The notes: generated from the sequence alone by a model not told the origin. Positions 37,291 through 47,524 are shown, counted from the first letter of the stretch. The stretch: 64,000 nucleotides of DNA from Schizochytrium sp. TIO01 (GCA_004764695.1 SMSO01000031.1:8166761-8230760), one strand, 5' to 3'. A program made the numbers and translations.

Positions 37291-40200
37291 TTAGTAGGTC
37301 TGATTATGACGGCGAATCAACTCTGTCAAGAATGCCTCTTGCTCATAATATCTGCGTCGCACCGGCAATGATTCTATAACTTTGAAGAGATCAGGATAAA
37401 ACGCGGGAACAGTATTGATGTACTCACTAAATGGTGCAAAACTAGTACGCAGAGAATCAGACTCGTGCACAAGAAGAATGGGCTTTTTCGCGTCAACTGC
37501 GGCTTGAAACTCCATGCACACAGCAGAACTAGCAAATATACCTTTCGTCAACACAAGGACATATACATGTGCCTTCTGTACGCCAGACTTCATTGCGGCC
37601 TGGTTCAAGTTTCCATGGTACTCTTGAGAAAGCCAAACTTTGAGTCCTCGATGAGATAACCTCTCGGACAACAACTCAGCAAGATTGCCTCCGGTGGACT
37701 CTACATGGCTTAAAAACACGTGGCTTTCCTCGTCATTTCTCAATTTTGGAATCTCGTAAAATGGCAGATTTGTTCCATCCTCATCTGTATCAAGGCGGCC
37801 AATATTTTCGTCAAAAAATGGTGCAAATTCCTCAACAGAAACTATATCACCATCCACGCTAACAATCTCTGTTTCGTCTGAATTACGTGCCTCCTCAAGG
37901 TCGCTGTAAACGATCTTTTCATCTGAATCAGGGCCAATAAGGATGAGATCCCACTTGAGGTGCTTAAAGAGAACTTCCTCCTGCTCTCGAAACATCGAGA
38001 TCAAAACTTTGATTACGGTTGCTGGGGTCTTTGCGCTCTGGTGAATTTCAATACGAATTGAGTCGACTTGTACACGCAAAAGAAACTTGCTACGTCCAAA
38101 TGTGAGTCTCGCTGTGTGTCGATCTAGAGCAGGTGGTACAAGAGGCGCTGTCCCTCTTATATCAGGTCTTGCTGCATGCGAAGCACACTGTGCGACAAGA
38201 CGCTGAAAAACTCCGTTGGGTAGGTAAAATGCAGAGAAATCAAGTTCACAAGTCAATCCAGGCTTGAATTTGCTCGTGTCCACATGGCGCTGCGAGTCTG
38301 ACAATAGACCTGAGACAAGGTACTCAGACTCTTTTGCCTTGCGATTGTACACCCAGTCACTCAGTAGCAAATTCTCTCGCATAAAGCGAATAAGATAGTC
38401 GACTTCTTCACCTTCCCACAGAAACTCAAGGAGACTATGTGTTGCAATTGCATCGCGACGCAGACGATAAAAGTCCTTATCCACACCTGCATTCCTCAAA
38501 TCACGATTTCGATACACCTGCTGTACATGAATGTCATCAGCGATAACTCGAGCTAGCTTATCAAGAAGCCACTGCGGTTCCAAGATGACCACACGTTGCA
38601 GGGTCTCAGTGCTACACAGGTGAACCACAACGCCAAGCGTATGGAAGTAGAGTAACATCTCATCCACATCCTCGTGGCTGCGACCATACAGAGCTGCAAG
38701 ATTGACCACATCATCATACATAAGATATGACTTTTTTTGCTGAAGTAAATCCTCATGTACTTTTAGCCAGGCAAGAGGCACTTTCTGCTTAACGTAATCT
38801 TGTTTCATAGCTTCATCCACAATTACCTGGCGTAACTGCGCTGCGCGATTCAAATCAGGACTACTATTATCTAATTCGTAAAACGGTCGACCGTTGGGAT
38901 TATAAACTAGGCATCCTGTGCAATCTCCAATGCGAACATCTTCCCGTAGAACTCGTGCAATTTTGTCGAGGCTTTTCTCATCTCTAATCTTATCGAGGTA
39001 GGTTCCGACCATTATAATTGGTGAATCAGGTGCATGGAGTTGAATACTGTTCAGCCAGAAGCGCAAGTACTCAACAGCGTTAGATCTTGACTGATCATTC
39101 AAGAGCTCCTGCATATCAAAAACAACGAGATAAATTCCCATATTGGTAAGAAATATGTGATGTAGAGCATAAAACACCTCCTGACCTCCGTAGTCCCAAA
39201 TTGTAAAGCTCAAATCAAAATCTAGAGATGCATCAACACCAGAGGCCTTTTGAAGCATTTTCTTATCATCTTTTGTCAACTCAAAACGCCTGGCAATCTC
39301 ATCATCGTTTGCCAGAACTTCTTCGTTTGCCGGAGCATCTCGTGGCACAGATCCGCTTGCAGGTGTTCCCGACAACCTACTACTGACACGCTTCGCTGAT
39401 TTTCGGATCGTGAGAGCAATGCTTCTTCGAATGCTTTTATGCTTTACTTCAGCTTCTGGGCGAATGCGACGAAGCGCAGCTTTCCGAACTTGCATGTCAA
39501 ATTCCTGAGCATCGTCAGGTAGCTCTTCAAAGTCCTTCGCACGAGTCCGATGTAAGTCCGCAACTTCCGTCGAAACATGCTCAGCTACATACGGCCTACC
39601 GAGCAGAGACCGCACCGTGGAAGTCTTTCCCGCAGCCCCTTGTCCCACGATCATCAGTTTCGCTCGGCCCCAAGCATGCTCATCATTCCCATGAATTGCA
39701 TCCTCAACGGCTTTGCGCCATACCGCAGTGTTGCCCTCATTTCTTTTTAAATATGTCGAAATCTCATTCCGAACCTCATTGCCGATGTTGTTAAAAAAAA
39801 TACTGTTGATTTGATTGAATAATGGCAAGCAACTCATGCAAGCGAGCAAGCATACATGCATGAACGTCAGTCATCGAGCTTGGCTTCGGGTTGGCTTGGG
39901 TTTCAGCATTTCATGTGTCGTGCTCTGGCATTTTGCGCATTGTTGGATCTTGATTCAAACACACAATCGCAGTCGAAACTGACGATCCCAACCAGCATTC
40001 AAACGCAACATGCAAACAAACCACCAACCAACACAGACCACCACGCCGCAGCAAAACATAGCACAGGATAGCACGGTAAACCAGTCTATAGCACCAAATA
40101 TCCAACCAAACAAGAAAACCACGCAACAAGCCCCATCCATATACAAGCAAGCAAGCAAGAAAGCAAGCCTTTCCACGAGGTGCTAAGACAGACAACCAAC

Positions 40201-46200: not shown

Positions 46201-47524
46201 TGACTGGTTCTCTTTCAGCGCCGCAGCCAGTGCCTTGGCGCCCTCATCGCCGATGTTGTTCTCTCTAAGACTGTTGATTGGATTGAATAATGGCAAGCAA
46301 CTCATGCAAGCGAGCAAGCATACATGCATGAACGTCAGTCATCGAGCTTGGCTTTGGGTTGGCTTGGGTTTCAGCATTTCATGTGTCGTGCTCTGGCATT
46401 TTGCGCATTGTTGGATCTTGATTCAAACACACAATCGCAGTCGAAACTGACGATCCCAACCAGCATTCGCAGGCAACATGCAAACAAACCACCAACCAAC
46501 ACAGACCACCACGCCGCAGCAAAACATAGCACAGGATAGCACGGTAAACCAGTCCATAGCACAAAATAGCAAGCAAACAAGAAAACCAGGCAACAAGCCC
46601 CATCCATATACAAGCAAGCAAGCAAGAAAGCAAGCCTTTCCACGAGGTGCTAAGACAGACAACCAACTTACACAAGTGATGTCAGTGACTGGTTCTCTTT
46701 CAGCGCCGCAGCCAGTGCCTTGGCGCCCTCATCGCCGATGTTGTTCTCTCTAAGACTGTTGATTGGATTGAATAATGGCAAGCAACTCATGCAAGCGAGC
46801 AAGCATACATGCATGAACGTCAGTCATCGAGCTTGGCTTTGGGTTGGCTTGGGTTTCAGCATTTCATGTGTCGTGCTCTGGCATTTTGCGCATTGTTGGA
46901 TCTTGATTCAAACACACAATCGCAGTCGAAACTGACGATCCATCCCAACCAGCATTCGCAGGCAACATGCAAACAAACCACCAACCAACACAGACCACCA
47001 CGCCGCAGCAAAACATAGCACAGGATAGCACGGTAAACCAGTCCATAGCACCAAATAGCAAGCAAACAAGAAAACCAGGCAACAAGCCCCATCCATATAC
47101 AAGCAAGCAAGCAAGCAAGCAAGAAAGCAAGCCTTTCCACGAGGTGCTAAGACAGACAACCAACTTACTCAAGTGATGTCAGTGACTGGTTCTCTTTCAG
47201 CGCCGCAGCCAGTGCCTTGGCGCCCTCATCGCCGATGTTGGACCAACGAAGACTTTGCTTTGAAGACTGTCGATTTGATTGAATAATGGCAAGCCACTCA
47301 TGCAAGCGAGCAAGCATACATGCATGAACGTCAGTCATCGAGCTTGGCTTTGGGTTGGCTTGGGTTTCAGCATTTCATGTGTCGTGCTCTCGCATCTTAG
47401 GCATATACGAAGTTTTATCTAAATCGATAAAATGAATAGACTTGATGATGAGAACCTACTTTAAGCTTGTTGCTCCCTGTCGTAGGTCTCGAAGCGCTTT
47501 CACGACACGTGGATTGTCAGACAT
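37291..47524 (-). CDS. LRR-ROC-COR-TIR Roco-family protein, 17 exons, ~1280 aa. Exons in transcript order: 47460-47524, 47169-47252, 46672-46755, 46187-46270, 45698-45781, 45233-45316, 44768-44851, 44292-44375, 43807-43890, 43315-43401, 42826-42909, 42341-42424, 41756-41839, 41263-41346, 40691-40777, 40205-40288, 37291-39802
   Basis: The last exon encodes a capping LRR (IFFNNIGNEV), the ROC GTPase (GQGAAGKTS, WDYGGQE, GTYLD), COR (VPLAWL, LLYFHTLGVVVH, ILEPQWL, LPNGVFQRL) and TIR (VFLSH, GLKVW, SAVCMEF, KPILLV). Each upstream repeat holds cag|T-CTT-nnn-nnn-AAC-AAC-ATC-GGC...CTT-GA|gtaagt = xLxxNNIGDEGAKALAAALKENQSLTSL. Exon 1 MSDNPRVVKALRDLRQGATSL ends AA|gtagg, also phase 2. The total of 3843 nt is in frame if exon 2 uses an AAG acceptor. 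Confidence 0.9.
39803..47390 (-). repeat. Tandem array of 15 complete intron+LRR-exon cassettes (periods 465-585 bp) plus a partial intron copy
   Basis: Exon-to-exon spacings are 486, 572, 493, 585, 485, 489, 492, 485, 476, 465, 465, 489, 485, 497. Introns are near-identical, start GTAAGT, end ATCAACAG and carry a CTGAC branch-like site ~65 nt before the acceptor. Length differences come from an internal (GCAA)n tract and a 20-nt deletion. Confidence 0.97.

Follow-up and report, generated by a model that had tools for sequence, protein, structure and literature searches.

Comparison with described systems

The best-described genes resembling the one analysed here are the LRR-ROCO genes of the brown algae Ectocarpus and Saccharina, in which an N-terminal array of leucine-rich repeats (LRRs), each encoded by one exon of constant length between phase-2 introns, precedes a Roc-COR module (Zambounis et al., 2012, PMC3341825; Teng et al., 2024, PMC11378527). 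Their LRR exons, 72 nt in length (PMC3341825), are shuffled and duplicated in tandem, residues of the concave LRR face are hypervariable and positively selected, alternative splicing and pseudogenes have been reported, and an immune role has been proposed (PMC3341825, PMC11378527). Here, we describe a predicted gene from another stramenopile, Schizochytrium sp. TIO01, localized on the minus strand at positions 37291-47524 of a 64,000-nt stretch of DNA (hereafter, the window; contig C30:8166761-8230760 of a 64-Mb assembly in 37 contigs, other contigs of which are denoted C4, C6, and C32). The brown-algal precedent, which had been invoked in a first-pass annotation of the window, holds well: the domain order from the LRR array to Roc-COR, the encoding of one LRR per exon, the phase-2 introns, the tandem duplication of exons, the variability of the concave face, the existence of pseudogenes, and the proposal of an immune role are common to both.

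The two systems differ in several respects. The exon described here has 84 nt and encodes a ribonuclease-inhibitor-type (RI-type) repeat of 28 amino acids (aa), matching Pfam LRR_6, whereas the brown-algal exon encodes a plant-specific-type repeat of 24 aa. A TIR domain is found at the C-terminus, in contrast to the plain LRR-Roc-COR proteins of brown algae (PMC11378527), and whole introns are homogenised (98% identical), giving the unit a satellite-like appearance. Alternative splicing has been documented in Ectocarpus, whereas the gene described here is known from DNA alone. One-LRR-per-exon ROCO genes were thus already known from brown algae, and the 84-nt RI-type exons, the homogenised introns, and the C-terminal TIR set the gene described here apart from them.

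The combination of LRR, Roc, COR, and TIR domains, which the first-pass annotation did not recall as having been described, is in fact already present in databases, both in Hondaea and in bacteria. Models from the thraustochytrid Hondaea, such as P0051, P0052, P0053, and P0058, have the same domain order (LRR_6, Roc, COR-A, TIR_2), and their LRRs are likewise of the 28-aa RI-type. Over Roc-COR-TIR, their identity to the gene described here is 29-31%, closer Roc-COR-TIR paralogues being 46-50% identical. They are database entries with automatically assigned names (LRRK2-like, NOD2-like) and only two to six LRRs, and are not known to include a homogenised array; our literature search found no paper describing these models. 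The same combination, as LRR-Roc-COR-TIR or Roc-COR-TIR, occurs in clusters from Bacteroidota and Acidobacteriota; in ESM Atlas, bacterial clusters combine TIR_2 either with Roc and COR-A or with LRR and Roc, which serves as a lead only. Unlike the gene described here, the bacterial proteins are encoded by continuous, intronless open reading frames (ORFs) and mostly carry LRR_4-type repeats. With all of them, including the Roco protein of Chlorobium tepidum, the likeness is one of architecture and fold at approximately 15% identity. A TPR-ROCO-TIR protein has been mentioned for Chondrus (PMC11378527).

More distant parallels are found among known TIR proteins and vertebrate receptors. Plant TIR-NB-LRR proteins, SARM1, and AbTIR share the sensor-switch-TIR logic; for the TIR domain described here, the nearest structural match is SARM1 and the nearest profile match AbTIR. 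However, compared with plant TIR-NB-LRRs, the switch is Roc-COR rather than a STAND NTPase, and the order is reversed, with TIR at the C-terminus. Vertebrate NOD and NLRC genes have 84-nt exons, each encoding one 28-aa RI-type LRR. Their output and switch domains, in contrast, are unrelated to those considered here, and they show neither homogenised introns nor a satellite-like appearance; the shared exon length may simply follow the repeat length.

Predicted gene structure

A 486-489-bp repeat with 95-97% matches was identified by Tandem Repeats Finder at 39774-47395, and the sole long ORF near this array is 37291-39861 on the minus strand (856 aa). Parsing of the minus strand demonstrates that this apparent 7.5-kb satellite is the intron-exon array of a predicted multi-exon gene. 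The gene opens with a 65-nt start exon and closes with a last exon of 2,512 nt, and between them lie 15 cassettes in tandem, each consisting of one GT-AG intron and one short exon. The short exons, 84 nt in 13 of 15 cases and 87 nt in the remaining two (43315-43401 and 40691-40777), are flanked by AG and GTAAGTTG and are open, without stop codons, in one frame only. The cassette introns, in turn, begin with GTAAGTTG and end with ACAG. The first nucleotide of each short exon is a T completing the preceding codon, and the last two nucleotides begin the next codon; hence, all introns are in phase 2 and all short exons are symmetric. The last exon (39802-37291) carries the frame of the array on into the 856-aa ORF. 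The predicted exons sum up to 65 + 13x84 + 2x87 + 2512 = 3843 nt, that is, 1280 codons and a stop. The hidden array of 15 open, frame-neutral cassettes recognised at first pass was thus recovered, including the near-identity of its introns; the intron length of about 400 nt has to be amended, since the cassette introns vary from 381 to 501 nt and intron 1 has 207 nt.

The start exon (47460-47524) contains an ATG at 47524-47522, with an in-frame stop 36 codons upstream, and comprises 21 codons and two nucleotides (phase 2) before the donor site GTAGGT. Its product, with GATSL at the end, corresponds to the C-terminal half of an LRR unit, and homologous start exons with an ATG are present in both paralogues on contig C4. 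Intron 1 (47253-47459), shorter than the cassette introns, consists in its 3' half of cassette-intron sequence and has at its end a 14-nt insertion that creates three competing AG acceptors. The 15 cassette introns, interleaved with LRR exons 2-15, together span 39803-47168.

The 15 short exons have 12 distinct sequences, and are described here by two of their variable residues. LRR exon 1 (47169-47252; 84 nt if the third AG is used) encodes R and W at these positions and Ser in place of a conserved Asn, and matches LRR_6 with E = 4.4e-5. The 84-nt exons 2 (46672-46755; R, E; split codon for V) and 3 (46187-46270) have the same sequence, and are followed by exon 4 (45698-45781; R, D). The pair G, Y is encoded by exons 5 (45233-45316; split codon for S), 6 (44768-44851; split codon for F), 8 (43807-43890), 10 (42826-42909; with the K and S variants), all of 84 nt, and also by the 87-nt exon 14 (40691-40777), which has one extra codon. 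Exon 7 (44292-44375; 84 nt) has R, H together with the K and S variants. Exon 9 (43315-43401), the other exon of 87 nt with one extra codon, is the most divergent one (LRR_6 E = 0.086). The remaining 84-nt exons encode W, S (exon 11, 42341-42424, with the S variant, and exon 13, 41263-41346), P, L (exon 12, 41756-41839), and W, H (exon 15, 40205-40288).

Every cassette intron contains a microsatellite, (GCTT)n, reading (CTTG)n on the gene strand and (CAAG)n on the window strand, with three to about 27-31 copies. Differences in its copy number account for the spread of intron lengths, and the two longest introns (485 and 501 nt) owe their size to long (CAAG)n tracts; microsatellite tracts were noted at 41118-41226 and 42180-42304.

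Domain content of the predicted protein

All ten short exons that were submitted singly matched the Pfam family LRR_6 (PF13516), with E from 3e-6 to 0.09, and seven of them reached the gathering score. A single exon covers only positions 10-24 of the LRR_6 profile, because the beta-strand spans the splice junction. The repeat units, of 28 or 29 aa, conform to the RI-type definition (LxxLxLxxNxIgdeGaxxLaxaL). The RI-type identity assigned at first pass is in agreement with these matches, as is the assignment of Roc, COR, and TIR domains to the last exon.

The last exon (37291-39802; stop codon at 37291-37293) encodes a degenerate terminal LRR followed by Roc, COR-A, COR-B, and TIR domains. Pfam searches yielded Roc (4.5e-18), COR-A (1.3e-13), and TIR_2 (1.2e-8; 35.9 bits against a cut-off of 28). 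An AlphaFold model of this exon, built on 29 homologues, has a pLDDT of 83.6 and a pTM of 0.80. In a Foldseek search, its best structural match was the LRR-Roc-COR protein of C. tepidum (6hlu, 9.3e-18), and the Roc-COR tandem 3dpu (1.6e-17), the COR-only structure 3dpt (8.4e-11), LRRK1, and LRRK2 were also found; the Roc-COR structures align over approximately 660 columns. By sequence and model, then, the last exon is predicted to encode a ROCO protein module, with COR-A/COR-B directly C-terminal to Roc.

The Roc GTPase domain (38932-39690) contains a P-loop, GQGAAGKTS (39619-39645), a DxxG motif, DYGGQ (39181-39195), and a TxxD motif, TYLD (38992-39003), which are invariant or nearly so in the 29 homologues. 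Between the P-loop/switch I region and DxxG, there is an insert of approximately 130 aa (39196-39618; ORF residues 82-222), which the Hondaea homologues conserve. In the model, helical parts of this insert alternate with disorder (pLDDT <50 at residues 149-178). The COR region (37762-38778) comprises COR-A, delineated by Pfam at 38311-38778, and COR-B, delineated by fold at 37762-38301.

The C-terminal TIR domain lies at 37294-37728, and the last 150 residues of the model match the SARM1 TIR in Foldseek with TM-scores of 0.74-0.80. A TIR-only profile matches the NADase AbTIR at 3.1e-12, and Glu784 of the ORF (37510-37512) is aligned with the Glu of the AbTIR Y-E-L motif, which we take to be the catalytic residue of AbTIR. 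Glu784 is nearly invariant in the 29 homologues and invariant in the TIR-only alignment. Judging by fold and by this conserved Glu, the domain probably belongs to the enzymatic (NADase) type, and catalysis is predicted.

No signal peptide or hydrophobic start was found in the start exon, and the protein is therefore read as cytosolic. Overall, the predicted protein of about 1,280 aa would consist of a solenoid of about 16 RI-type LRRs, one per exon, followed by Roc, COR-A/COR-B, and a C-terminal TIR. A Pfam search found no central NB-ARC or NACHT domain, Roc-COR being in that place; by its predicted domains, the gene is thus NLR-like in logic, yet not a member of the NLR/STAND class.

Paralogues and the cassette family in the genome

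A genome search with the large exon produced 53 matches, and paralogous arrays were found on C4, C6, C32, and elsewhere, so that the locus is one of many. The closest relatives are two C4 copies within a group of C4 loci (L013-L016) that also includes a fragment at 242828-244191. Copy A (C4:245493-259297) is 95% identical to the window gene and homologous to it in the promoter, the start exon, an array of 21 cassettes, and the large exon, which has stops at codons 22 and 71. Copy B (C4:262518-268392), 86% identical, retains the promoter, the start exon, and five cassettes, and its large exon is interrupted by a stop at codon 697 and, ahead of TIR, by an insertion of 5 nt. Although both paralogues are broken, none of their 26 LRR exons has lost its open frame or its splice sites. 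The C6 copy, 75% identical, contains one TGA and has 11 cassettes; the C6 introns, of 129-221 nt, are as conserved as the C6 exons (72 and 71%, respectively). The C32 copy (L005, C32:2779251-2784683), 54% identical, is intact and has diverged, non-homogenised LRR exons of 84 or 87 nt and introns of 70-90 nt. About 20 more distant Roc-COR exons were found, yielding more than 20 full Roc-COR exons in the genome; those of the distant ones that were tested also end in TIR_2, and locus L008, approximately 92 kb from the window, likewise ends in Roc-COR-TIR. For nine paralogous Roc-COR exons, 1.5-kb flanks were examined, and in all nine cases LRR exons of 84 nt lie immediately upstream on the same strand.

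The cassettes themselves form a much larger family. All 37 cassettes on C4 and C6 have exons of 84 nt, in frame, stop-free, and bounded by AG and GT, with introns from 129 to more than 500 nt. A degenerate pattern of the exon start has at least 632 exact matches genome-wide, on many contigs and in several cases near contig ends, and none in a reversed control. When an exon detector was applied to approximately 230 kb of unrelated ROCO-bearing metagenome contigs, it gave two chance hits, both of them non-LRR. The exon together with approximately 85 nt of the upstream intron recurs at 77-83% identity in many arrays with a period of about 385 bp, including arrays at contig ends. These arrays belong to the same cassette family; with its period of 486-489 bp and longer, microsatellite-bearing introns, the window array differs from them and represents a separate, younger sub-family whose sisters are the two C4 pseudogenes. 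The conserved 3' part of the intron, of about 85 nt (e.g., 40289-40375 upstream of exon 15), is thus shared at 77-83% identity by otherwise different arrays. It includes ACTGAC approximately 64 nt before the acceptor, with AG in between, and a branch-point role of this element is uncertain. An Rfam search with the cassette introns produced no match.

The strongest evidence for real exons is the constancy of exon length and phase in the face of a sixfold range of intron lengths. A non-coding satellite resembling LRRs by chance was considered and ruled out by the single open frame, the LRR_6 matches, and the constant exon but variable intron lengths. Based on these sequence comparisons, the predicted gene, nuclear and protein-coding, is a member of a large lineage-specific family in a labyrinthulomycete-type protist; the family shows birth-and-death turnover, with pseudogenes and hundreds of cassettes, and its exon-per-LRR structure is old and conserved across arrays.

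Relatives in protein and transcript databases

The best protein-database matches to the large exon are Logan proteins with 52-54% identity. Many paralogues from Hondaea fermentalgiana also match, some with WD40, SAM, or LRR_6 domains at the N-terminus and TIR_2 at the C-terminus. Logan protein P0001 agrees with the C32 paralogue at 803 of 815 residues (99% identity), and hence a very close strain is represented in public data, whereas in the same collection of 5.8 billion proteins no match above 54% to the window's own Roc-COR-TIR exon was found. The missing protein could be explained by its absence from that strain or by failed short-read assembly of three copies that are 93-97% identical.

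Related mRNAs exist in the group: MMETSP transcript proteins from Aplanochytrium stocchinoi and A. minuta contain six to nine contiguous 28-aa RI-type LRRs followed by Roc-COR, and a transcript from Mucochytrium quahogii encodes Roc-COR-TIR. A metagenome scan with the single protein produced no match. A scan with the alignment produced 35 loci, mostly bacterial-type continuous ROCO ORFs or short contigs; none of them contained 84-nt LRR exons, the scan being uninformative about other labyrinthulomycetes. A literature search for ROCO, LRR, TIR, or immune receptors of labyrinthulomycetes or thraustochytrids returned nothing relevant within the collection searched. It has been reported that SAR (stramenopile, alveolate, and rhizarian) species, including Schizochytrium, have at most four ROCO proteins (PMC11378527), in contrast to the more than 20 Roc-COR exons of this genome and dozens of database entries from Hondaea. 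Published thraustochytrid ROCO counts are thus far too low for this genome.

Variation among cassettes

The cassette introns have a mean mutual identity of 98.0% (range 96.0-99.8%), a nucleotide diversity of 0.0206, and 32 variable columns among the 401 of the alignment. The exons fall into two classes of columns. All 11 columns assigned to the binding face are variable, with a diversity of 0.49, approximately 24-fold above that of the introns (Fisher's exact test for variable columns, face against intron, p = 4.5e-12). The other 73 columns, which encode the scaffold, have a diversity of 0.018. The face columns comprise the two x-x codons of L-x-x-N, the codon following I-G (Asp, Ser, or Tyr), and two exon-final bases with which the split codon, for Asp, Val, Ser, or Phe, begins. 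They correspond to variable positions 5, 7, 8, and 13 of the unit L-T-S-L-x-L-x-x-N-(N/K)-I-G-(D/S), which we take to be the exposed residues of the LRR beta-strand and the following loop, the textbook ligand face. As placed by the LRR consensus, the variation appears to be confined to the predicted concave ligand face. Since scaffold diversity does not exceed that of the introns and the excess is confined to the face, this pattern is not that of relaxed constraint. The Asp/Ser dimorphism after I-G (GAT/GAC or TCA/TCG) was observed genome-wide.

Every exon begins with the same T, so that the residue of the split codon is set by the upstream exon alone; for the same reason, combinatorial coding across the split codon was considered and ruled out.

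The cassettes are mosaic: when informative sites were compared in pairs, 115 of 253 combinations failed the four-gamete test, which requires at least nine exchange or recurrent-mutation events (Rm) within the 490-bp unit. For example, exons 7 and 10 have three linked variants in common and differ in the x-x codons, and exons 11 and 13 have the same x-x codons and differ in the three-base D/S switch. In a tree of intron sequences, the window introns form one tight clade nested among longer C4 branches, indicating that the array was expanded or homogenised in place after the gene duplication. We conclude that the array has recently expanded in situ and that its units have exchanged sequence in a mosaic fashion. 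At the same time, several face types recur across arrays: G-Y in the window and C4, Q-W in both C4 arrays, and L-G in C4 and C6. Exon 9 shares GGTTAC and the rare Gly codon GGG with C4 cassettes. Some patches therefore seem to be older than their homogenised surroundings.

Point mutation alone would hardly raise face diversity to approximately 24-fold the intron level, and two explanations are considered. Homogenisation may have affected everything except selected patches. Alternatively, the face patches (6-nt x-x, 3-nt D/S, and 2-4-nt split codon) would have been moved by templated conversion with very short tracts, a scenario we regard as improbable. If it were true, the genome-wide reservoir of at least 600 cassettes, including those of the still-open C4 pseudogene arrays, could serve as donors, and the result would be templated diversification of a ROCO-TIR receptor, either in the germline or even within clones as they grow vegetatively, a protist analogue of immunoglobulin gene conversion in chicken or of the assembly of variable lymphocyte receptors (VLRs) in lamprey. 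An incomplete germline gene of the VLR type, to be completed with copies of donor cassettes in its flanks, was also considered, and is rejected here, as the predicted locus is already complete from the ATG to the stop.

Proposed function and alternative explanations

We propose that this is a functional family gene encoding a cytosolic, NLR-like receptor of the immune type, with LRRs as the sensor, Roc-COR as the switch, and TIR as the effector. We consider this reading probable, with considerable room for doubt; the immune role is suggested by the architecture and the pattern of variation, and the mechanism is modelled on Roco/LRRK structures and on those TIR NADases that require self-association. 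The LRR arch would bind a variable ligand on its concave face, and Roc-COR, replacing NB-ARC or NACHT in otherwise NLR-like logic, would act as a nucleotide-dependent switch and oligomerisation module. Clustering induced by the ligand would then join the TIR domains, leading to cleavage of NAD+ or a nucleotide signal, and finally to the arrest or death of the infected cell. New specificities could arise by unequal crossover or gene conversion among cassettes in the germline, with selection acting on the face residues; given the symmetric phase-2 exons, the gain, loss, or skipping of a cassette would be frame-neutral.

Several observations weigh against this proposal, most of them concerning the present state of the gene. 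The cassettes are as regular as described at first pass in 14 cases, and that description overlooked a 14-nt insertion in cassette 1 that may break the frame. The insertion (47253-47266, minus strand), which duplicates the AG|TCTT exon start and resembles a footprint of patch insertion, follows directly on the conserved acceptor, and neither of the C4 paralogues has it. Use of the conserved ACAG acceptor would produce a 98-nt exon, a frameshift, and a stop, whereas the in-frame 84-nt exon (47169-47252) requires the third AG, 14 nt downstream and in the AAAG context; the frame is kept only via this distal AAG acceptor or by skipping cassette 1. From what is generally known of acceptor choice, the proximal CAG is the likelier acceptor. 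Furthermore, the window branch of the large exon has accumulated eight synonymous and 12 non-synonymous codon changes, compared with 17 and 22, and 43 and 75, on the branches of the broken C4 copies. As the window branch is no cleaner than those of the pseudogenes, the intact ORF argues only weakly for a gene that functions at present, and we estimate that with only 20 changes a frame would stay open by chance almost half the time. The closest paralogues, on C4, are pseudogenes, and the array is so young that the absence of stops from its 15 exons carries little independent weight. Finally, other ROCO proteins act in cytoskeletal or developmental signalling.

Three alternative explanations are considered. 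The gene could be freshly inactivated or dying, in which case the insertion in cassette 1 would shift the frame, no full-length protein would be made, and decay like that of the C4 copies would follow. The insertion being specific to the window, the premature stop that the conserved acceptor entails, the stops and the 5-nt insertion already acquired by the C4 copies, and a ratio of non-synonymous to synonymous changes not below that of the pseudogene branches all agree with such a fate, as does the lack of a near-identical database protein when the C32 paralogue has one. However, the third AG recreates the usual AG|TCTT exon start in frame, skipping of cassette 1 also preserves the frame, and the 856-aa ORF, the 30 other predicted splice sites, and all catalytic motifs are intact. 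Moreover, the expansion of the array and the diversification of the face codons postdate the split from the C4 copies, which implies selection on the protein until very recently. On balance, we regard recent inactivation as unlikely, though it has to be taken seriously. The gene may otherwise be functional and encode a ROCO signalling or scaffold protein, similar to those of Dictyostelium or to LRRK, and not a sensor of pathogens; its LRR variation would then come from relaxed constraint or from a variable endogenous partner, and TIR would act as an adaptor. Known ROCO proteins do have diverse non-immune roles (PMC11378527, PMC4104024), and the brown-algal genes respond to several abiotic stresses (PMC11378527). 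We nevertheless consider this quite unlikely, given that the excess of variation is restricted to the ligand face over a scaffold at the intron level, that the family turns over by birth and death with pseudogenes and hundreds of cassettes, and that the TIR belongs with enzymatic ones (AbTIR, SARM1, plant TIR), retaining the catalytic Glu.

It is also conceivable that the repeat was collapsed or over-expanded in the assembly, in which case cassette number and order, or the near-identical introns, would be an artefact; tandem units that are 98% identical over 7.5 kb are notoriously difficult to assemble. This seems very improbable: the units can be told apart by the 12 exon sequences, by intron lengths of 381-501 nt, and by microsatellites of 3-27 copies; the 64-Mb assembly in 37 contigs is consistent with long reads, presumably exceeding 7.5 kb; and independent arrays of the same structure are found on C4, C6, C32, and elsewhere. 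An artefact would alter the cassette count, and not the kind of gene.

Labyrinthulomycetes are osmotrophic marine protists and hosts of RNA and DNA viruses, and some of them are pathogens of molluscs and seagrass. If the immune-type receptor gene proposed here is expressed, they would possess a large, fast-turning family of intracellular sensor-switch-TIR receptors with an NTPase unlike that of plant and animal NLRs. The ROCO hypothesis put forward for brown algae would then extend to a heterotrophic stramenopile and be linked to the conserved TIR-NADase arm of immunity, which serves cell death and signalling. As the 15 units are 98% identical save for the ligand face, the residues that determine specificity could be read straight from the DNA. 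More generally, apparent satellites can hide multi-exon genes that are discarded by ORF- and repeat-based annotation.

Other features of the window

Only three other ORFs longer than 200 aa are present in the window, at 32878-34731 (plus strand), 50462-51238 (minus strand), and 54223-54879 (minus strand). The ORFs of 617 and 258 aa have no Pfam match, and the ORF of 218 aa contains a SET domain (E = 3.5e-5). Such a low number of long ORFs suggests that the genes of this region are intron-rich.

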